DNA of 64,000 nt, from contig CM060731.1 in the NCBI GenBank assembly GCA_030704615.1, positions 44,082,001-44,146,000 of the forward strand, read 5' to 3'. The stretch comes from Takakia lepidozioides. Taxonomy: Eukaryota; Plantae; Bryophyta. Below the pieces are notes generated by a model. It made no database searches. It saw only the letters and a list, made by a program, of their open reading frames with translations, and had not been told where the DNA came from. The translations under genes and the position numbers were made by a program. Numbering within the stretch: position 1 is the first letter of the stretch; every line of letters begins with the position of its first letter. Positions 8,002 to 41,339 of the stretch are shown here, in pieces.

Positions 8002-9014
8002 TGCCCACATCCAATGGTAAAAATTGTTTGACTCCCACTGGCCTAGAATGTTGTCCAATCAGCGATGGCCACCTAGCAGTCAAGTTTGTGTGGGCCCCTT
8101 CCATGCAAGAGCATTTCCGACACAGTGGTTTTTGGAAATTTGTGGATGTGGCAGACTTTCTTTAAATTGCATGCTACCAATTGGAGATGATCCATGTCGT
8201 CAGGTCTAATGTTAAGGATTAATGAGTCCCGCACCTATGTAATGCCCCAAGACCATTTAAATGAAGCCCAAGCCTACAATGATCCGCTCCTAACCCTTAC
8301 TATATTACACTAGCACACAACCTACTTTGAGAGTATCTCACGTTAGTTTTACAATGTTCTTTGAAAGAAGTATAACCAAATCTTGTCTAAAAACTCTGAA
8401 ATATTAGGAGCACAATTGTCAATTATGACGTGATATGGCGCAACAATGTCGCCACCCAAACCGACATTACATCTAATAAACTTTCTTTTTATGCTTTTTC
8501 ACTTCGACACAATCAAATTTACCTCATTATGGAGGTGAATTTACCTCATTATGGAGGTGACGGCCTACTTGTACTACATGCATGACATTTTTTCATTTCA
8601 TTTTTATTTTTTGTCTTTTGAAAATGAGTTGTTGGACAATGGACGATCGTCCAACTCCAGTCAATTCCAGTTGACAGTGACCATACAACAATGACCATAC
8701 GATTTTTCTTTTTTCTTTTTTCCCAGATAGTCCGAACGATAGCTAGACACCTTCGGTGGTCATATTTTTTTTCAATTTTTATTTATTTTTATTTATTAAA
8801 ACCCCAGTTTTTTTAATTTTATTGTGGGGACCGCGAGAGGTCCCGATTTTAATTAAAAATAAAAATAAATGAAAATTGGCACCACGAATTTATCCAAAAA
8901 AGAACAAATCTGGCAGTCCCGATTTTATACATAAAAACAAAAAGAAAAAACCAATGACTGCCAGCCCAATTTCTGGGTCCCCAGAAAAAACCTTTGACAA
9001 GGAGATGACAAAAA

Positions 9015-12000
9015 TCAATGAGTGCTAATGTAGCCCTCAGTCCACTTCCAAAGCTTATCAGCCAATTCCCTGTCCAATGCTCGCCCGGTCAATGGAGTTT
9101 CATTGCAATCTACGAAGTATTTTCCAGTCACCTCATCCAGGCTCGGGTGTGCTGCAAGATAGGTTTGTGTAGCTGCCCCCTGCCATGAGCACCAACAACA
9201 CAAGCAATTGTCAAGAAACTGCATAGAGCTAACATCTGGGCATTTGTTGAAATCAAAAAGGAAAATTGAATGCTCTCAAGTACCCTCAGTCTCCAAATCC
9301 TTTTTTCCCTCCCGAGGAGAAAGCGGAAGCGTATAACCCAGAAACAAAATAAAAGGTCTCTACTGAAGCTTGTATGCAGGCTGACAACGTGAAGATTTTT
9401 GATGTATACCTGCTGAACATTCTTGTAGATGAAATTGGGCAGAAGGGACTCTGTTCACATCACGATGTAACTGTTGTGTCAGATGATCAATCGAAATGGG
9501 GAGTGATGATGGTTGCGTGAATTTCTTCCTTAGACCATTAGTATGGCATATAATTTTCTGGAAAAATCCAAGCAATATCCATTTTGGAAATGGAGGAGGC
9601 ATAAGAGACTTTCTTACCAAGGAGCCCCAGTGGACCCTTAATTTTGGTGAGCTTGGTCCTGATGGCTCCTGGGTGGAGAGTATTGACTGTTATGTTGATG
9701 CCTTGTTTCTGCACCGAGTCAAGAGAAGCGACACACTGATTAGTGACTCTAAAAGATTGGCACCATACTGTGTTGCACCCATAACTGAACCACCTTTAAG
9801 TCCAGTTCTTATGACTTGCCTTTGACCAGTCTGGTGACTTGAGATGAAGCATTGAACAATCAGCACGGGTTCCCCCCAGGTGCCCACAGTGGAGCTGAGT
9901 AAGGCAGTAGGAATACCAAAGATTGTCATATAGACTTGGTGGGGAGAGAGAATGTACTCATAAGACGTTGTTTGCCGTAGCCTTGTGGCCATTGACCCCG
10001 CGCCCAGTTTGAGCGGACACAAAGGAACAAGTCAGGAGCTGACGCCGGTAGTAAGACTTACCTTGGAGTAAACAATTGATCCGGGTTTTCGAGATATCCA
10101 GAGAGAGAGAGAGGGGGGGGGGGGAGAGAGGCATGCACCGATTTGGCATTCTCTGTCAACATGGGCCATTGAGCATGCACTACGGCTCTATATTCACTTG
10201 TTGTGGAGTTTTCACCCACAACTTGGGCATAAAGCTCGGGTAAAGAAGGTTTGAACAACCATGGGCAGCAAAAAGAGGACCTGGAGACGTTGCGAGAGCT
10301 CCTGACAATGGAGGATGTTGGCAAGCTTTGATTGACCATATCCCGAAAAACCGTAGATTCTGTTCCACACCATCCAGTAAACCCCCTGCTTTCAGAAGAC
10401 CAATGGTAACAGAGCTATAATCGATGTAGAGAGGGCTGGGCACAGTGAGAGGACTATAGGCAAGGGCTAATGTAAATAACAACCAAGGAGTTATCGATAC
10501 CCAATTCATTGTGCAGGTCCTTACGTTTTTGAGTTGATTAGTTGGTCAAATGCTATCCCACCCTTCGGAGTGAATGTATAGATTGCTCCCGATACAACAA
10601 CGATGCGTCCTCTGATGCCAGTCTGCTTGGCAGTCGTCTTCATGGTGTCCAGCAGCAAGTCTGTCAACAAAAAGTGACCTGCACACAGATATGAGGCCCA
10701 AACCCCTGTTAGCCGACCAACATGAGAATTCAATGACTTCTTGCCAGTATTCTTTCAGAAAATTCCCTAGGCCCTGTTTAAGCTCTGGAATTCCCAGGAA
10801 TAATGCCCAACATTGGGATCAACTTAAGGGTTGGTAACAAAGAATCAATCCTGTACAACGAATCTGACATTGAACTTGTAAACACAGCTTGTCTTGCAAC
10901 AGGGGCATACTCTTTTGGAGAGATTTGGCCAGCCTGCTTCACAGTGGGTTTCGCCCATAAGCCCCATGAGGGGAGGATGAGTTACTTTGCCCATAAGAAT
11001 AAGTGCTAAATCTCTAACCTGAAAGACAAATGCACACATCTGTCACTCTTGCTCCCTCAGTGTCCAGACCATTCAGGGCATGAGAGCAAACCCAAATAGT
11101 TGGTGGCAAACATCAACTCCAGGCCATCTGACGTAGATCTAGGCTCGTCAGAGCTGATTCCTCCATTATTTCTGCAGAGAAATATCAAGACATCAGTAAG
11201 CGTAAGCTCTCGTTTCAAATTGTTTTTAAGAAGCTAACAACTTCACTCAATGGCACATACGCATCACATGGTATGATGGAGAACCTTAACTCGCTAATTC
11301 CCTTGATGGTTTGACTAGGGTGTCTCTCTGGTGAGAGTTCTTCCAGGCAGTTTATAAACTGTTTCTGTTTACCAACTTTCAAAATCTCAAGGCTGAGCCA
11401 AAAGCCCGGCCCTTTTGGGATCGAGTTCTTGGACAAATCACACACAGCAGATTGATGTTTGTGTGAAGGGATTCTAGAGGATATCTGGAAAACTCGGATC
11501 AATTGTCTGTTTCAAGGTAAGTGTTACTCCTGCCGTCAGCCCCTGACAAAGGTAGTTTCTGTCCCTTTGCGTTCCACTCAAACTGGGAGGGGGGTCAATG
11601 TCCACAAGCTGACTACGGCAAACGTCTTATGAGTACATTCTTCCTCTATGTCTCTCTCTTATGGAGGCTTTAGCTAGAAGACACCCAAAGTGCTTCGCCT
11701 TACCCTTATGACACCCTGCGCTGCCTTTCATGCAAAATCAGTGCCCTGAGTTGTCATTTTGGACCTTCAGTGGCTCTCTTGTGTTGGTCTATTTTTTTTC
11801 TTCGGCCTCCCATGGATGTTGCAGAAAGTTCATTATCTCTTCCATGAGTTTCTGCGCGGGAAACAATGGGACACATAACCCTTTAAAAGTAGGGAATCAA
11901 CTTACACAAGAATGTTAAGGGGTAAATTGCGAGCCTTGAAGTCTGCAGCAAACTTGCGAACTGAACTCAAACTGCTCAAATCGAGCTGCATGACCTCCAC

Positions 12001-12579
12001 ACGGGCCTTCATGTTTTCCTCCAAAATCTCTGCCTTCACCTCCTCTCCAACTTTCAAATTTCTGATAGCAAGAACCACTCTTGCCCCCCTGTTTGCTAGT
12101 ACCCTTGCAGTCTCCTTTCCAATCCCAGCAGTTCCACCTGCCAATCCATCAGCACTATGATATCAGGAATTCGACCACGCCTCTGTGTCACAGAGAGCTA
12201 AATTCCAAATTGTCCATATGAAACTTGATTTGGTTGAACTGTAGCACTGACCTCTGTAAAGTTTGAGGGAACTTTGCCCACGCTGTTGGGCCTCTCAGCA
12301 GCAGCAGATGAACATGTAAAACCTTTCCTCTAAGAGCTTGAGCGCTCCTTGTGGTACTAATTATACGACCATGACCCAATTTCGTTTGGAAATCCAACAT
12401 CGTCTCAATAAAAGCTGGAAACATAACTCAAAACTGAGGGTTGAGAAGGATGATCCACCTGTGATGATGGCAGTGTAGGAGCCCAACGAGAGACCATCGG
12501 TAACATCTTCAGCGGTGGATCCGGACCCAAAGCCACTCGGTCCAGGTGTGGCCTTCAAGTAGGTCACAAATGCCCCCAT
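9015..12579 (-). CDS. Short-chain dehydrogenase/reductase, TIC32-like (retinol-DH/WWOX-type SDR); 8 exons
   Basis: Exons 12579-12459, 12137-11906, 11171-11092, 10678-10525, 10359-10281, 9708-9618, 9450-9410 and 9179-9015, all GT-AG and in phase. Motifs: GPSGFGSGSTAEDVT, TGGTAGIG, LDLSSLSSVRKFA, FATNYLGHFLLT, YGQSKLANIL, LHPGAI, GAATQTYLA..GKYFVDCN. Confidence 0.92.
9947..10054 (-). repeat. Intronic dispersed repeat, inverted relative to 11523-11643
   Basis: The reverse complement TTACTACCGGCGTCAGCTCCTGAC...CTCAAACTGGG...GGGGTCAATG...CTACGGCAAAC...GTCTTATGAGTACATTCT aligns with 11523-11643. Confidence 0.85.
11523..11643 (+). repeat. Intronic dispersed repeat, inverted relative to 9947-10054
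   Basis: TTACTCCTGCCGTCAGCCCCTGAC...CTCAAACTGGG...GGGGTCAATG...CTACGGCAAACGTCTTATGAGTACATTCT. Confidence 0.85.
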
Positions 12580-12830
12580 TTCTCTTCTCCTTCTAGAACG
12601 GTATCCGTCTCAAAAACTGGGACACTGTGTCCTTAGCCCTCTCCTCAGTAATATTCGGTGTCCAGCTAAAGCTTCTTTCAGCTCTTCAGCGTAGTGATGA
12701 GAGGTCTCCACCTGTCCGTAAATCCTCTCTCTTTCCAACAATTATCTGTCTCTCTCGCACGCTCTCTTCGAACTTAAGTGCCCCCACTTGACAATGTCTG
12801 ATCGTCACAATAATTCTCTCACTTTGCACC

Positions 12831-13779: not shown

Positions 13780-16381
13780 AATAATGTAAAACTTTAACCT
13801 GCTTGCAACAACTCCCAAACTACATCAATCTCTAATGTAGACATGTCAGAAAATCCCATCCACTCACACCTAATCTCACCCTCGACGAAACCCCCCCCCC
13901 CCCCCCCCCTTCTCCCCACACAACTCCGACAACCCCGACGCCTTCACCATTGAAGCAATTCTTGGAGTCAAGACCCAAACGTCAATTGATTCCTTTGGCG
14001 CCACTTGCATGGATACTTACTACCACTGCAAATGGGCTGGCTACCCTTCAGAGGATAACACCTGGCAAATAGAAGATGACCTATTTTGGTTCCCATGATG
14101 ACTGTAATCCCAACCACAATCTCACCTTTCTCACCACCTTCTACAAACACACTAACATTGACTACCTAACCCATATTCACCAGCAACACGCCACCCCCGC
14201 TCAACCTACAAACAACCGATACATCCACAAACCAATCACTGCCCCCAATGTCCACATCTCCATAACCGAATGCAACCCCGACAGAGACATCCAAATTGAC
14301 CAAGCATTAATTCTCCACATGGGTCCCCGCCTTTCCAATATCTACGCTCCACACGGCCGTTTTATTGGGCTCATCCCCAATGATAGTCTACCATGGCTAT
14401 GGGGAAAATACTAAGCTACAAACTCATATCCCCAAATCTTACAACCCCCAAAACAAAACTTCGCCACAGAACTGCACTGGCTAGTAGACCGCTACCTCAA
14501 AGATAGCCCCCCCCAAAAACCACGCTCCCTTTCCAAACTAAAAGGGGCATACGCACACCATACTCTATCTCAGGACATCCTCGACTTACTTATAAATACA
14601 TTCCAGATCACACACTCATACTACTCCAGCCCACTCACATGGCTATGACACTAAACACATTTGTCCACCCACACCAACACGACTGCATCTTTGGCGCCAT
14701 GGGTACTGCTACCCATCACTCATGGGGAGGTCGTGGCTTTGCCCACCCCCCTCCAGGTCCCGTAGCCCACGAAGCTCTCCAATGGGCAAGATTTGCCGCC
14801 CACTCATTCCCCCAAGCGTCCACAATACTCGTACTCACCCAACAAAATGCCCCAGATGCCTCTCATCCTCTTCTACGCCTCCCAAGAAGGGTCAAGTTAC
14901 TAGCTACAATTGAACCAAGTCAGCTTAAATATATGCATATCCCACCTTTTCCCAAATATCTTAGACAGAAAGAACCTACTCTAACCTTGATTCTACTTGT
15001 ACAACACTCCCTACATACCAATATATCGACACCCTTTCTACATCAGTTAAAACAACTACTAATCATAACACACAAAATAAAAGCTACAATCAACCACCCG
15101 CCTACCTCAGACCACTACACACCCACCACATTTCCCAAAATTAAACCAAACAAATCCTGGGATAAGGCGCTACCTCGCCCCCCCCAGAACACCCCATCAA
15201 TACTCATACCCCCTATCCCCTCGATATATCGACAAAACACCACCCTTAAGTACGCCCTGGCCAACTCACACTACACAGATGGATCCCTCACCATACCCCA
15301 TGCAGGATATGGAATTTACCATGTAGGCACATGCCAAGGTGTCGCCCTCAGGCTACCCGGCCCTGCCACCATCCTCAGAGTTGAACTTATGGCCATCCAC
15401 AATGCCCTCTCCCTTATTGATGCCCCCCCCCCTTTTTCTATTACATCTTCACTGACTTCGAAACCACATCTCCCGGCCCTTCTTCCCATCACCACCACCC
15501 AGACCGCAATATCACCGCCGCCATTGTCAACAATGTCACTTCTAAAACCCACCCAGTACACCTCATCAAAGTTCGCTCCCACACTGGCATTCATGCAGTC
15601 CCTACTCGCTTAGCTCGGTGCCTCCAAACCCAAAGTTGACCTCACGGATGACCTTATCCACATTGCCCATACACACCCCTTCTGGTTTATGCACCCCATC
15701 CTTGACCCCCCCCCGCACCTAAAATACACTCAGCTACTCACCAAATACGTGACACTTGGCCACATCTCCTTAGCCAATGCTTACATCCAGTTATACGTGG
15801 CCTTCATATCACACGACACACCATGCAGTCTGACACCTCCACAAACTCTTTTTAAGCTGTGCCGAAACCAGATGGTTCTCGCTCATTAACGCAGGCATCT
15901 ACCAAGGTCGGCCATCAGACCACACAGTACCACCATGGCTACTACCATGCATATGTACCCAATCGCCATGTTCCTGCCCCACTAGGCTCTACCTGAATAT
16001 ACTCCTTGCACATGGCCTACCTATTAACACCCTGCCTCCCACCTCACCATCCCCACAAATCAATATTCACTTCATCGAATTCACATTTTGCCATGACCGA
16101 TATCCCAACGACTCGATTATAGAAAAACGACAAAAATACATCTCGCTCATCCTTGCAATCCGATGACGCGGCTGGAAAACCGGCCCATTAATTGTCATCA
16201 CCGCCGATACTTGAGGCGACATTCATAACACCAGTATCAACAACATACACGACAACTTCAAAATCCCCATCCTCCTCATCCATAAATGTTACAAAGCAAT
16301 CCACCTCATGGCACTCCGTTCCCTCACAACTATTATCACCAACAAACACCAACTAGAATCCGGCTCTTCGAATGCACCCTA
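13780..16381 (+). mobile_element. Dualen/RandI-like non-LTR retrotransposon remnant, copy 1 (C-terminal half: chromodomain, PCIF1-like MTase, RNase H, RLE endonuclease); frameshifted
   Basis: Chromodomain FTIEAILG...YHCKWAGYPSEDNTWQIE (13943-14083). MTase-like F(Q)ITHSYYSSPLT...DCIFGAMG...GRGFAHPP. RNase H HYTDGS...GYGIY...ILRVELMAI...KVRSHTGI. RLE-like IHFIEFTFCHDR...EKRQKY..L...RGW...LIVITA. Homologous throughout to 20165-22196. The 5' boundary is approximate. Confidence 0.8.
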
Positions 16382-16957
16382 GGTCACCCAGGGTACCCCT
16401 GGGTACCCAGGGGATACCATCGACCCTTCTATTTCCTCCGGTCACTCGGTGTCCCACAAGACACATTCCCTCTTTCTTACCTTCTGAGTGACATGGAACT
16501 AAAGGGAGTGTAACTCCACTCAGGATTCCACCGCGTTACACAGGCCTGGGGTTTAAACTCCACTTGAGGTTACATTGGGTTACAGATGAGGAGTGTCACT
16601 GGGCTATATGGAAGGGAATGTAACTACTTGGTATAACTTGCACTTGGTCTCGAAATTTGACTAAGTATAAAATTGACTAGGGGTTACACAAGACGACCCA
16701 GGGTGACACTACTCACAAGCTACCCACAGGGAGATGAACATCACCTCACCGCCTATGCTGCATTTCACCTTACCAGTAGGCTATTCACCACGACTTATTG
16801 ACCTATTTCATTCTAATGTATTTAATAGTGAATTTGGGGGTAGGAGGGGGTGGGGAGGATTTGATAGGGTCCCAATAGAAAGAGCCCATGCTGCCCCAAT
16901 CGGGCGAAAGTATTGTCAGATCACAAGCGTCCATTAAGTTCTTACATTATTCCTATT
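16382..16957. mobile_element. Terminal fragment of the same MULE family as 1-7235
   Basis: Contains GGGTTACA/TGTAACT motifs and ends in the identical 26-mer CATTAAGTTCTTACATTATTCCTATT (16932-16957). Confidence 0.65.
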
Positions 16958-19420
16958 GTTTACCGTCTTGTCCGACCATTACCTCTGCATCCCCGTGTAT
17001 ATAGTACCTATGGGTCCAGTCCTAAATGGCCCCTCGGTAGACACAAGACCGTGTATTCCCACTCCTATTCCCCCCTCATCTATCCTGGCATTCCAAGCCA
17101 AGTTTCGATCCATTTCCGGTAGAGCTCTCTCTGATTTTAAAACAATACTAGATCGATATTCAACAAACCCCACCCTTCACATTTGGGAAGACGCAAGCTC
17201 CAAGTTGGAACAAATATTCACTCAAATTACAGAATCCACGCTACATACATGCACAAAGTTCCCTGATCCAGTACAAACTGAACGATAAAAAATAAACGGA
17301 TGATACCTGACAATAATGCAACAGAGGAAATGGCAAGCACAATTAAACACCCACCACAAAATCCACAAAGCTATTACAATCCTCTCATCTGATCCACGAG
17401 ACCCCCAATGGAGAAATACCCCACCTATTATAGACCTAAACACACTAGCAGCTTGCAATACAGATTGCCCGATACCCCAGAATGATGCAGACATACATAC
17501 ATGGCTCATATCTCTATCCTGAATTGGTCGAGATGCAAAGAAAAACGCTTACAATATCACCAAGCAATATCACCAAGCAAATACAACCAAAAAAATTTGC
17601 TCAATCATACTGTAAGATGCTTCAAGACAAGCCTCGTCTCATACATAAATCAATCTTCAACTCTTCCCCATCTCTTCCTTTGGATGCGATATGCGACAGC
17701 GCATGAACTCTACACACCTCTCCAGCCTCTATCAATAAAACCGTTTTCCCAACAAGCAAAGACCACATACCAACCACAAGCACATGCATGTTTTCAGCCA
17801 TCACATCACATACAACACTATTCATGCCAAGCTAGGCATTACCCTTGGCATGATATAGACGGCTTTAAACTCGAGCGAAGGGGACCCTTACAACTTGACC
17901 TAAACGCTTACCTCACCCCGGAGGTCTACCATTCATGCCTCAAATCTCTCTCCAACTCCAAAGCGCCGGGCCCAGACAACATACCTAATGAAATACTAAA
18001 GGCATTGGACCCACACTTCCATCGATTAATTCATCGCTTCTTTCTGATGTGCTATCAGCTCCATAGAGTTCCCAAATGTTGGAAAAACAGTCGCACAATA
18101 CTAATTTACAAAAAAGATGACCCTACCCAATTAGGCAACTACAGACCTATAGCTCTTACTAACACCCTTTATAAACTATTTACTAGCACGTTGACCACCT
18201 TCCTCACATCCTTCGAAGAGCAGCATCATATTCATAGTGACTCGCAAGAAGGGTTTTGAACTACCAGAAGCACAACCCGACAAATCAAACTCATTATTTC
18301 GGCCTTAAAAGATGCACGTTTTAGTCAAACAAGACATATTTTTGCTATACATTGACTTTAAAAATGCATTTGGCTCAATTGACCATGCGCGTCTACTAGC
18401 CGTCATGGCTGATCTTGGATACCCACAAGATGCAGTCATGCTCATTGGCAATATCTACACTGAAGCCACCACCACATACTCCGGGCCTTCCTTCGACAAT
18501 ACATTACCTATACCAATTCATAGAGGTACCATACAAGGGGACACACTTAGCCTATATCTTTTTATTGTGAACTTCTAGAATCTCTCCTCCGCTAGCTAAC
18601 CCCTCCTCCACTAGCTTGCTCGAGGTAACATATGATACCAATACATTACCTCTCCCAATAACATCCCAGCAGCTGCATATGTAGATGATCTTGTACTGTT
18701 ATCCAATCGACAAGTGAAAAAACTAGAAAGATTCAACAAATGGGCAACAATTTGGAACTAAGCTTACATAAATGTGCTATCACGGCGATCAGCCATTATA
18801 CTAAACATGACACACAAGCCCTGTCAAGAATACTAAATAACACGGTGCTGTATAATACTCAACCCTTCTCATATTTGGACCAAGACAACCCATACACATA
18901 TTTGGGTATACAATTGACACCCTCTCTTAAGTGGAGTACTCAAAAAGACACAACTCAGAAAAAACTCCTCTCACAAGCATCTGCCTTATTGAATTCGTCA
19001 GCCACAATGCGCCAAAAATTATTTATTCTTGACACAATACTCAGAATTTCTATAAAATATCTTTTTCATGCAACGTCATTCTCTATCCCAGACGTAAATG
19101 CACTCGATAGAATCATTATACGCCTATCCAAACAAATATGTGGTCTCTCAAATAGTACCCCCAATGCACTAGTGCAGCTACCCAGGAGCCTCTATGGTAT
19201 TAGTACTACTTTAGCTGAGGCCTACGCCAGAACGTTGGGAACGCGATTGCAGGAAGCTCTAAACGATGTTGGTAAAGTGGGGGATATTTATCAAAGACTC
19301 CTTAAGCATGTCGCCTCTAAATTTGGTGGCTTAGCAAATTTACTAGCTATTAATCCCATTGCATGCACCCACTCCCCAATCACTATGAGCCTCTTCATAC
19401 TCAAACATATGCACATTACT

Positions 19421-20156
19421 CGATGAGCAGACGAGCCATGAGCCATGAGCCATGAGCAGAGTTTTCGATCCTACACCGAAGCAGTTCGGAAGAGGCTTGG
19501 GATATAAGCAAAGCTGAAGGACCAAAGTTATATTCCTAAATAGAAGATATCCCACCTATACCCGCGCGGGCAAAACGGAAAATGGGAAGCTGGAAGTCTG
19601 TGCCGACTTCTCAAAAAAAAAAAAAAAAAAAAAAAAACTGAAAATTGGGAAGCCGGAAGTGTGTGCCGACTTCTCTAATAATAATAATAATCCAGAAAAT
19701 AGGTAGCCGAAAGTCTGCGCCGACTTCTTCTTCTTAAAAAAAAAACCCGGAAAATAGGCAGCCGGAAGTCTGTGCCGACTTTTAAATTTACAAAAAAAAA
19801 CGGAAAATGGGTGCCGGAAGTCTGTGCCGACTTCTAAAAAAAAAGGTCATGAAGGTGTCCACCTTCCTGTTATAAGAGGTAAGAAAATAAAAAAGAGTTG
19901 GACTACAAAAAAAAAGACAAAAAGAAAAAGAAAAAAAAGGCACTGACACCCAAAATATGGGGAATTCCCGAACCTAGTTTTGCATCCGAACCTAACTTGA
20001 ATGTCCTGTGATGAGGGAAATCGTGCACTAGTAGCATTGATAAATTGTCATAAAACAGCTCCACATGCTCTGAAACCAAGGAATATTCCATTAAATATGC
20101 TTAAAATATGTTTTTTTGGGCCTGTGCTCATTCTTAAATATGCTCACTGCTCATAG
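19421..20156. mobile_element. TIR-bearing non-autonomous DNA element inserted in LINE copy 2; contains a hairpin-repeat array
   Basis: Ends are CGATGAGCAG and CTGCTCATAG (inverted), with subterminal (ATGAGC)n. The LINE coding sequence stops at ~19420 and resumes at ~20165, and the chromodomain segment is missing. No TSD is visible. Confidence 0.55.
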
Positions 20157-22191
20157 AAAAACAACTCCCGGGTACTACATTGGTAATATAACACTCCAAA
20201 GATTGGAGTGGTTTTGGGAAAGGTTTCATTCCAACCCACTCCACCTCACATACCCACATACGCCGTCAATATTTGCAACACATGTCTCCAGACTCATCTA
20301 GCGTTACGCACAAGACCTACCACCCAAAACACCCACAACAATAAACAAACTTTCACTTGCACATTCCCACTCGACCCTTCCCGCGCTCCTTCTAGAGTTC
20401 CTCACCACGGAGCTGCAACTCACTCACTCATACTACTCTAACCCTCTCACATGCCCACTAGCTGGTTTATCTACTTACTCGAGTTTACACGACATTGATC
20501 AGCACATTCGATCCTTGGGGACTGCAAGGTTCCACTAGTGGCAAGGGCGAGGGTTTACACACCCCCTAATGTCGCTTCTGCCAGTGAAGCGCTTCATTGG
20601 GCGCGCATTGCTGCACATATATTACCAGAATCATTCACCGTCTTATTTATTCCTAATACTAACCATACCAACTCTAAACACCCAATACTAAGCGACCCCC
20701 TGGAGTATTCACGTTAACTACATTTGAACCTCGCTCAATCATTTATCAACCCCCACCGCCGTGGCGCAATTACATGAAATATGCAGAACCATTACTAACT
20801 AAACTAGTATGTGTACACAACTCACAAAACCCGCAAATACCTACCACTTTCTACCATCAACTGGACCGGATACTAAAACCGGATTTATTTGGTCAGACAG
20901 CCACGGTCCACCCGCCTACCCAAACACCCAACAAATACCCCCGAATCAATCCGGACAAACCATGGAGACGTGTGACCCCAGGCCTATTTGGGCAGCGAGA
21001 CAAAAAACCTTTGTTATACCACTCCCAAATTTCACGGAACCCACAACCTTGAAATTCCCACCACAAAAATGTATATATACTAATGGCTCCTTAAAATATG
21101 CCCAGGCGGGTTATGGTATATATTTGGTTGGCACCAACACCAGAATATATAGCCGTCTCCCTGGTCGCCAGAATATTTTGCGAGCGGAGCTTATGGCTAT
21201 ACATGATGCTCTCAAGTCTCTCCCCTACCAACCTACTTCAATATACTATTATTTATAGACAACTTGGTCTCCCTATACCTTCTCACAAACCAAATTTGCA
21301 TGCCATCATCACAGATCCACCATCCTGATATTATTCTCATAAAAGGAATCGTCGATGTTGTATCCTCTTTACCGCTGCAAATCCATATACATACAGTTCG
21401 ATCTCACACATGCATAATATGTAATGACATAGCAGACCATCTTGCTCAACTTGGTACCATTCAGCCAATCACCAACCCCTCGACCAGCCTTATCCACCAG
21501 TCGCACACATACCCGTTATTTTATAGTGCTACTTGATCTTGGTACATACATCGTTGAATGAGACCTATGGGTAAGGATCCAGTAGAAAGCACAAGGGCTA
21601 GATTCCCAACCATAACACCTATACGGAATCTGCACACACACATTCAAGGCGAGACCAAACTACTCATACAAGAATCCCGCACCTACATAAATTCCTACAC
21701 ATCTAAGTGGGTCTCGTCCCCGCACCTGCTACATAGTATGTCCAATCATTTTTGGACATCCCCCACGGTTACTGATGCACAAATCAAACAAACTTTGAAA
21801 TTTCGGTATGGTATACATGGGCAATCAACGACGGAACTTCTAGCATTGTCGCCGACAGAACCGCTTCCATATCTCAAAATACATCTTTTGGAATTCGCAT
21901 TCTGCCATGATCGAAATCCAGATCAATCAATTATAAACAAACACGAAAAATATGACCCAATCATACATGCCCTCCGTGAGCGAGGCTGGAACACGACACC
22001 TCTAACCATCATCACTGCGGGTGTCAGGGGCGGTGCTCATATCCATAATATCCAGGGTTTGAAGGATAATCTCAACCTACCACCCAAATACACTACACCT
22101 CTACTACGAGCCTTACATTTCATGGCTATCACATCACTCACATCCCTAATCCTCAACAAACGTAAGATTGAAAGTGGCCAGCTAGCCACTA

Positions 22192-40398: not shown

Positions 40399-41339
40399 AG
40401 TTTGGTCTGGTAGTCTATTTTGAAATGTACCAACGTCAGCGAGGTTGAACCATCTAGAGGTGGGTTGTGGTTGAAAAAGTATGTGGAATTGCCAAACTAC
40501 TTGAGATGTGACCATGTATCTATTTGGGAGGGGGTAGGGCATTGCACATTCTCCAATGTTTGTTATGATATTGTAATGGTCAAAATAAATTACGTCATTT
40601 GCTATGTTGTCTATATCGAAATTGGAGAAATTGGAAAGTTTGTCTCATCTGTACATCAATTATAGCGTTGGATTACTAGAAGTAGTTCGAAAAGCTTAAA
40701 AATAAATAAGTAAATAATTTGAGAATTTGAGATTTATTTATGCTAACTTTGATAGTTGTCATTTCTTTATAATGAATTCTCTAACAAGAAAGAAGGATCA
40801 AGTGTGACTTGTTCATATGACTATGCAAGAGATGCACAGAGGTAATTTAAGAGCAATGATAGACAAATGGACCAAACTTTGCAATTGACTACAATAGACG
40901 TATATCTGAAACAAGAGCTTCAAGCACAGATGATCACCTGTAATATCATATCTAAATATCGGAATTGATATATTTTATTAATATATCATAATGATCCCTA
41001 ATATTCAAATAAATTTTATTTTTTTCAGATTTTTTCTGATAGGATAAGCTTACATATATTTTTTTAATTTACTAAGAGAAAGATTTTGGCTGAAGCCAAC
41101 ATAAATAAGAGACATTTTTTGGACAAACCAGATATTGTCTGGCCATATTATTATACTAAATGATTATAATCATTGATGCAATAATTATAAATAAATAAAC
41201 ATGAATATTAACTTTTCGGCAAACTGATGGAAATTCTATCGAGGTTTCCAACTTTGAGGTTCTATCACTCATGTATTGTCAATCTGATGACTAATTGTTA
41301 TTCTGTAATTCATCCATGAGATGAAGTCTGTCACTATGA

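Follow-up and report, generated by a model that had tools for sequence, protein, structure and literature searches.

The window analysed here, that is, the whole stretch of DNA, comprises 64,000 nucleotides of Takakia lepidozioides (Bryophyta; GenBank assembly GCA_030704615.1, contig CM060731.1, positions 44,082,001 to 44,146,000 of the forward strand). A C/A-rich stretch on its plus strand carries one retroelement family, of the long interspersed nuclear element (LINE) type, in two diverged copies that lie head to tail (copy 1, about 13874-16415; copy 2, about 17000-22190). Both copies are dead, and the element in the window is an ordinary dead repeat. The subject of this work is a domain of its polyprotein that resembles the catalytic core of PCIF1/CAPAM, the cap-specific mRNA (2'-O-methyladenosine-N6-)-methyltransferase, which modifies the cap-adjacent adenosine of mRNAs. 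Over this domain the two copies share 44-47% protein identity, compared with 43% over RNase H and 53% over the C-terminal nuclease.

Copy 1 is 5'-truncated and begins near 13874, after a poly-C tract. Its features are as follows.

13943-14083, plus strand: chromodomain within the LINE polyprotein (30.8 bits with Pfam Chromo, cut-off 25.1; E = 2.8e-7)
14100-14411, plus strand: "region A", N-terminal in the PCIF1-like fold, with LPWLWGKY as its last residues (tblastn to the relatives P0003 and P0056; model alignment)
14412-14414, plus strand: in-frame TAA stop that breaks the open reading frame (ORF) (ORF reading)
14439-15010, plus strand: core of the PCIF1_WW-like domain of methyltransferase fold; frameshift at about 14637-14645 (188 bits over its full length with the family profile A4)
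14616-14639, plus strand: motif I-like block SYYSSPLT, ECFASPLN in PCIF1 (alignments; Pro at least 90% conserved)
14681-14695, plus strand: D-C-I-F-G block, D-G-Y-F-G in PCIF1 (D, F and G at least 90% conserved in alignments A4 and A5; aligns to PCIF1)
14744-14755, plus strand: motif IV position, H-P-P-P in place of N-P-P-F (family alignments)
15260-15720, plus strand: RNase H (Pfam RNase_H, E = 0.012 for ORF 14639-15610; tblastn to P0052 residues 75-441)
15750-16415, plus strand: decayed CCHC finger and putative restriction-like endonuclease, to the polyprotein C-terminus (tblastn to P0052 residues 530-746 and to the C-terminal ORF of contig L007, E = 1.6e-37)

The frame-0 ORF 14076-14414 of copy 1 ends in DSLPWLWGKY at the TAA. 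Past this stop the same frame reads ATNSY...NFATELHWLVDRY...HTLSQDILDLLINTFQITHSYYSSPLTW as far as 14642, with the next stop at 14646, and a +2 frame ORF of 324 codons starting from 14639 reads MAMTLNTFVHPHQHDCIFGAMG...WGGRGFAHPPPGP...ASTILVL and goes on into RNase H. This ORF reading agrees with a first-pass annotation of this DNA in its translation, in the stop at 14412 and in a frameshift near 14640. The limits which that annotation had given to the domain, 14382-14842, proved too narrow, since the core and the upstream part of the fold together reach from 14100 to 15010. In the restriction-like endonuclease of copy 1, the ITRH and IEFTFCHD motifs are retained and the KPD motif has decayed.

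The domain is a homologue of the PCIF1 catalytic core

In each copy, the sole Pfam match of the N-terminal half of the domain was PCIF1_WW (PF12237), with consistent profile coordinates. The broken pieces of the window reached 14.4 bits (copy 1, 14415-14642, E = 0.029) and 14.3 bits (copy 2, E = 0.031) against a gathering score of 31.1 bits, and these matches taken alone are suggestive only. An exhaustive phmmer search with the 324-residue window ORF returned 47 proteins. One of them (P0035, a caecilian "mucin-5AC-like" protein) was rejected as a true mucin that matched through a low-complexity artefact. PF12237 was matched by 22 of the 46 genuine relatives; scores above the cut-off were obtained for P0004 (39.6 bits), P0028 (44.5 bits), P0056 (36.6 bits), P0036 (41.0 bits) and P0009 (34.9 bits), and also for the more distant relatives L017 (56.7 bits) and L018 (53.9 bits). 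A word-indexed protein search with the same window ORF gave no match, for which the length window and the decay of the copy were blamed. The WW domain had no match in the Pfam scans of the relatives.

Profile A4 was made from a 30-sequence alignment of the domain core that contained natural relatives and not the window copies. It found 84 further proteins, most of which were already flagged by PF12237. Among all PDB sequences, its two best matches were zebrafish and human PCIF1 (6irx, E = 1.2e-5; 6irv, E = 2.6e-3). The HMMER alignment paired the LINE blocks with ...RY...LPV.VFEAL...FGV.FECFASPLNC...D.(Y/F)FGSRG of PCIF1, and the human PCIF1 blocks that the first-pass annotation had quoted (SLPVHVFEALHRLFGVSFECFASPLN...DGYFGSRG) are present in the alignment to chain 6irv. 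When the breaks in the window copies were read through as X, the same profile scored copy 1 at 188 bits and copy 2 at 129 bits.

Two AlphaFold models were built on alignments of natural relatives. The core-only model was mediocre (predicted local distance difference test score, pLDDT, 71), with PCIF1 as its top match (Z 9.0), and the longer construct, residues 27-345 of P0003 (P0003:27-345), reached a pLDDT of 82.5. The top six Foldseek matches of the longer model among 350,542 chains were six PCIF1/CAPAM entries (E = 2.7e-10 to 2e-8), followed by the ZCCHC4 family (E = 4.8e-4). Its VIA-align comparison with human PCIF1 gave Z 17.7 and a root-mean-square deviation of 4.0 Å over 225 aligned residues, pairing model residues 68-319 with human residues 417-664, and the next family reached Z 8.1. 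In the ESM Atlas, a chordate PCIF1 cluster came first (template modelling score, TM, 0.63) and a chlorophyte PCIF1 cluster second (TM 0.60). Region A, about 100 residues before the Pfam core, belongs to the PCIF1-like fold. The helical domain of PCIF1 was not found in the model, which aligns to human residues 417-664 only; its part in forming the cap pocket was reportedly described by Akichika and colleagues in 2019.

Because three independent routes agree (family members above the Pfam cut-off, the match of A4 to PCIF1 in PDB and the structural alignment of the model), we concluded that the domain is a true homologue of the PCIF1/CAPAM catalytic core, corresponding to human residues about 417-664. 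The PCIF1/CAPAM-like domain named in the first-pass annotation was thus recovered, and the Foldseek comparison it had suggested returned PCIF1 in all of the top six places. A resemblance due to chance or to generic Rossmann-fold likeness, or a host sequence carried by one copy, would fit the E value of only 0.03 that the window pieces alone reached in Pfam, and the two-sequence profiles of these pieces, which did not find PCIF1 in PDB. We consider this explanation very improbable, however, since the relatives exceed the Pfam cut-off and match PCIF1 chains reciprocally, the Z score of 17.7 compares with 8 for other methyltransferases, and the domain is shared by two diverged window copies and by over 100 relatives in which its neighbouring domains are the same.

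A probable Dualen/RandI-type LINE as host element

On one strand of contig L007, an Exo_endo_phos_2-type endonuclease is followed by a reverse transcriptase (RVT_1), a degenerate stretch resembling a chromodomain, the PCIF1-like domain, the last part of RNase H and a C-terminal ORF that weakly matches a nuclease family of the PD-(D/E)xK type. Its reverse transcriptase matched Pfam RVT_1 with E = 9.5e-27, and its apurinic/apyrimidinic (AP)-like endonuclease ORF matched Exo_endo_phos_2 with E = 1.6e-4, below the cut-off. Every one of these parts was matched by tblastn in copy 2 of the window, in the same order. The features of copy 2 are listed below.

17064-17396, plus strand: C-terminal part of the AP-like endonuclease (tblastn to the L007 AP-like endonuclease ORF, E = 1.6e-12)
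17753-19411, plus strand: non-LTR (long terminal repeat)-type reverse transcriptase, frameshifted (tblastn to the L007 reverse transcriptase, E = 3e-75)
20149-20690, plus strand: PCIF1-like domain, interrupted by a stop (20536-20538) and, near 20565, by a frameshift (Pfam PCIF1_WW, E = 0.031; 129 bits against profile A4)
within 20149-20690, plus strand: motif IV, H-P-(break)-N (reading across the break)
21049-21850, plus strand: RNase H and the following linker (Pfam RNase_H, E = 4.6e-5; tblastn to P0052)
21852-22190, plus strand: remnant of the putative restriction-like endonuclease, which has lost the segment from CCHC to KPD by deletion (tblastn to P0052 residues 626-738 and to the L007 C-terminal ORF; frame comparison with P0052)

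Of the AP-like endonuclease, the C-terminal part in copy 2 alone remains in the window. RNase H was clearer in the relatives, where Pfam RNase_H matched P0052 with E = 2.5e-14 and P0016 with E = 1.4e-17. P0052 is an intact ORF of 749 residues on contig L001. After RNase H it contains CTMCNLRELDTCHHLLGRC, RHN, RLKPDLL, IEFTYCPD and KKTKY, a series which we take to follow the order of R2-type restriction-like endonucleases. The predicted order of the single polyprotein is AP-like endonuclease, reverse transcriptase, chromodomain, PCIF1-like domain, RNase H, and CCHC finger with restriction-like endonuclease. We labelled the element as Dualen/RandI because it appears to combine an AP-like with a restriction-like endonuclease, the pair that defines this group.

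A Dualen-like LINE with the domain placed between reverse transcriptase and RNase H had also been proposed in the first-pass annotation, and both the host and the position agree with the order in L007 and copy 2. The same annotation supposed that the domain had been captured by this particular element, which the distant relatives do not bear out. PCIF1_WW is followed by RNase_H in L018 and L022 as well, with a PDDEXK-like part behind it in L018; L017 showed the PCIF1-like domain only. Since the domain order is the same in distant relatives, the PCIF1-like domain is an old, standard and selected module of this LINE clade and not a capture by a single copy.

The chromodomain sits between the reverse transcriptase and the PCIF1-like domain within the LINE polyprotein. 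It is also found in P0003 (residues 1-26), in the same relative place as in copy 1 and above the cut-off (Pfam Chromo, 36.6 bits), and P0056 and P0028 have it in degenerate form. Integrases of Ty3 chromoviruses are known to carry chromodomains; to our knowledge, no LINE has been described with one. Such a domain may steer insertion of the element towards marked chromatin. An origin of the window chromodomain from part of a neighbouring Ty3 integrase, as in L001, was considered and rejected: P0003 contains the chromodomain and the PCIF1-like domain in one ORF, and the LINE fragment of L001 begins downstream of the place of the chromodomain. At L001:2800-3760, on this metagenome contig, a decayed Ty3-type integrase with a chromodomain-like end abuts a 5'-truncated LINE copy on the same strand. 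This integrase is a chance neighbour which could mislead domain assignment.

Some further observations concern copy 2 and its surroundings. The place of the copy 1 chromodomain is occupied in copy 2 by an A-rich, repeat-like segment of about 670 bp (19430-20100, plus strand), which translates to K runs and repeated GKWEAGS-like units and is probably a later insertion or replacement. At about 21800-21880 (plus strand), comparison with P0052 showed that about 125 codons are gone between the KFR(H/Y)G block and LEFAFCHD; with them went the CCHC finger as well as the KPD motif that belongs to the restriction-like endonuclease. A weak match to P0052 residues 536-588 at 40399-40557 (minus strand, E = 1.4e-4) is probably a short piece of one more related LINE. 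Exon-like ORFs of a short-chain dehydrogenase/reductase gene (e.g. MAGGTAGIGKETARVLANRGARVVLAIRNL...) occupy about 9000-12600 on the minus strand, immediately upstream of copy 1, which lies on the plus strand.

The domain has been under purifying selection

The pairs of sequences were saturated at synonymous sites, so identity by codon position was used in place of the ratio of nonsynonymous to synonymous substitution rates (dN/dS); the protein-guided alignment inflates positions 1 and 2 somewhat. Between copy 1 and copy 2, the identity was 0.54 at the first, 0.76 at the second and 0.33 at the third codon position, and between P0056 and P0055 it was 0.68, 0.77 and 0.41. In every pair among seven loci, the second position was more conserved than the first and the first more than the third, which was near saturation. 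Some columns of alignments A5 and A4 are almost invariant, although the mean column identity is only 20-33%. The codon-position pattern and these near-invariant columns together showed that the predicted domain was under purifying selection while the families diverged.

Motif IV is degenerate in the land-plant clade

The proline of motif I (SSPLT here, ASPLN in PCIF1), the D..FG block, W.G and the proline of motif IV are at least 90% conserved in the family alignments. By analogy with M.TaqI, we presume that these kept residues lie on the cofactor side of the site, and we take the D-C-I-F-G block as the contact to the cofactor adenine (motif III in the same analogy). The first residue of motif IV is much more variable. 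In 108 sequences it was H in 56, N in 19, Y in 9 and F in 8, and all of the N residues fell in one clade, marked by FASPLN, in which the motif is mostly N-P-E-Y. In the clade marked by SSPLT, to which the land-plant sequences belong, the motif reads H/Y/F-P-x-x and never N-P-P-aromatic, and its fourth residue is D, N or T. In the model, HPPN occupies residues 218-221, directly after the fourth strand (residues 214-217). The first-pass annotation had remarked that motif IV of copy 1 reads HPP and has lost its aromatic residue; this turned out to be typical of the whole land-plant clade.

The FASPLN clade is the distant one (P0094-P0132, L017:7851-8657 and L018:7983-8978). It keeps FASPLN, has N-P-E-Y in at least 13 of 31 sequences, and reaches 54-57 bits on PF12237 (L017 and L018). 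Its FASPLN...ANPEY members are candidates for active retroelement-encoded enzymes of the PCIF1 type. On contig L018, an NDC10_II match (L018:4361-4918, plus strand, E = 3.4e-5) was observed 3 kb upstream of the NPEY-clade module of PCIF1-like domain, RNase H and PDDEXK, on the same strand. The NDC10_II fold is related to that of tyrosine recombinases.

The domain of the land-plant clade, we infer from its motif, no longer methylates adenine: N6 methylation is disfavoured because the catalytic position drifts between H, Y and F. Our results thus favour, with a probability of about 0.6, the reading that the annotated region forms the middle part of a fossil Dualen/RandI-type non-LTR retrotransposon whose PCIF1-derived domain is most likely non-catalytic. 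The plant-clade domain itself would, somewhat more probably than any other function, be a non-catalytic RNA- or cofactor-binding module for the element's own ribonucleoprotein, next to RNase H. A non-catalytic module is the most likely function because H, Y or F stands in place of the catalytic Asn and the stacking aromatic residue is missing, while the cofactor-side residues have been kept. An ancestor of the element probably captured an active PCIF1-type enzyme, and the distant clade, in which the domain order is the same, retains FASPLN...ANPEY. The plant-clade domain would hold RNA, perhaps also S-adenosylmethionine (SAM), without catalysis. Its target in cis would be the transcript of the element itself, or an RNA:DNA hybrid which, in the course of target-primed reverse transcription, would be passed to the RNase H beside it. 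The first-pass annotation had offered methylation or binding as possible functions; of the two, binding now appears more likely, and methylation less likely in view of the degenerate motif IV.

Several points weigh against this interpretation. The HMMER local alignment of A4 to PCIF1 ends before motif IV, and the equivalence of HPPx and NPPF is supported by its place after the fourth strand of the predicted structure and by the family alignment. The presumed inactivity is a reading of the motif, and conserved cofactor-side residues would be expected of an active enzyme with an unusual motif IV as well. The relatives are mostly metagenome proteins. For the host element, the Pfam matches of the restriction-like endonuclease are weak (L_protein_N, E = 1.4e-3; PDDEXK_7, E = 0.077), its assignment otherwise being a reading of motifs, and the putative Dualen/RandI label is read from the domain make-up.

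The alternative to be considered most seriously is that the domain has kept its methyltransferase activity with a non-canonical motif IV (H-P-P/H-x), but this appears unlikely. Such an enzyme would methylate the element's own RNA (for example, the cap-adjacent adenosine) or its cDNA, which could make the RNA more stable or hide it from the host. It would account for the conserved prolines of motifs I and IV, D..FG and W.G, for the purifying selection on the domain and for the N-P-E-Y retained in the related FASPLN clade, and high activity on capped RNA is known from PCIF1-like enzymes outside the metazoans (bioRxiv 10.64898/2026.10.22.757692). However, in the plant clade the catalytic position carries H, Y or F, and D, N or T takes the place of the aromatic residue at the fourth; the model covers human residues 417-664 only, the helical and WW domains not being found; and in natural relatives of PCIF1 a mutated motif goes with inactivity. 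An example is insect Pcif1, whose motif is mutated and which is inactive in vitro but still functional (Franco et al. 2023, PMC10158991). It resembles the LINE domain, as read here, in being a naturally occurring relative of PCIF1 which has a mutated catalytic motif and which selection has kept for a non-catalytic role. It differs in being a cellular gene product that retains the WW domain and acts with RNA polymerase II, and it is not a transposon module.

Comparison with PCIF1, DIRS1 and known Dualen elements

With PCIF1/CAPAM (PF12237; PDB 6IRV to 6IS0), the LINE domain shares the methyltransferase core fold and the blocks P..F...V..L..RY, LP......L...F.(I/V)T, (F/Y)(A/S)SPL(N/T)C and D..FGS.G. 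In contrast to NPPF of PCIF1, its motif IV is H/Y/F-P-x-x. The LINE domain, which probably has no enzymatic activity, is also embedded between the chromodomain and RNase H of a retrotransposon polyprotein.

For DIRS1, a pseudo-methyltransferase of the PCIF1 clade within a retrotransposon polyprotein has already been published. According to Iyer, Zhang and Aravind (2016, PMC4738411), the methyltransferase domain of DIRS1 retrotransposons is a member of the PCIF1 clade, is inactive and, by their proposal, binds the transcript that serves as template. The first-pass annotation had treated the DIRS methyltransferases as a separate precedent; as the DIRS1 domain is itself in the PCIF1 clade, the concept is less new than it seemed. 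Both element types carry the domain beside RNase H, with catalytic residues substituted. They differ in that the LINE has an AP-like and a putative restriction-like endonuclease and places the methyltransferase fold before RNase H, whereas DIRS1, by description, has the order reverse transcriptase, RNase H, methyltransferase.

This likeness raises the possibility that the domain passed between the LINE clade and a DIRS1-type retrotransposon, in either direction, and did not come from a cellular PCIF1 gene. In that case the element would be a new host of the known DIRS methyltransferase domain. The shared clade, the adjoining RNase H in both element types and a match of the model to eukaryotic clusters bearing RT_RNaseH in the ESM Atlas (TM 0.44) speak for such an exchange. 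We regard it as improbable, because the model is nearer to the cellular PCIF1 clusters than to the clusters bearing RT_RNaseH, the domain order is reversed, and no tyrosine recombinase was found in the window copies or in L007; DIRS1 was here compared by description and not by sequence.

Published Dualen domains are the AP-like endonuclease, reverse transcriptase, RNase H, CCHC and restriction-like endonuclease, with a SET methyltransferase and a C48 peptidase in addition in a cryptophyte element (PMC5029228). The element described here has the AP-like and putative restriction-like endonucleases, reverse transcriptase, RNase H and CCHC in one ORF in common with Dualen/RandI (Kojima and Fujiwara 2005; Kapitonov et al. 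2009). The PCIF1-like domain and the chromodomain are absent from the published domain lists covered. No published description of a PCIF1 domain in LINEs or other non-LTR retrotransposons was found in the literature covered, outside which that founding account lies.

Implications for the LINE clade

A PCIF1-derived module and a chromodomain can now be added to the domains listed for Dualen/RandI, a clade on which arguments about how LINEs exchanged their endonucleases have been built. Two unrelated classes of retrotransposons, this LINE and DIRS1, have a PCIF1-clade domain beside RNase H, which points to a shared need in the handling of template RNA. The family spans sites from near-canonical (NPEY) to degenerate (HPxx), and so provides a natural series of what happens to a methyltransferase fold after catalysis is lost.

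The NPEY members are candidate new cap-specific methyltransferases. That some members of the family are working cap-adjacent adenosine methyltransferases is a rather doubtful proposition at present; it would be likeliest for the FASPLN...ANPEY clade and less likely for the plant members with odd motifs. If it were true, a LINE would write N6,2'-O-dimethyladenosine (m6Am) or another N6-methyladenosine (m6A) mark on its own transcript or RNA:DNA intermediate. The mark would stabilise the RNA, improve its translation or evade host surveillance, and the plant clade would represent a later, pseudo-enzyme stage.

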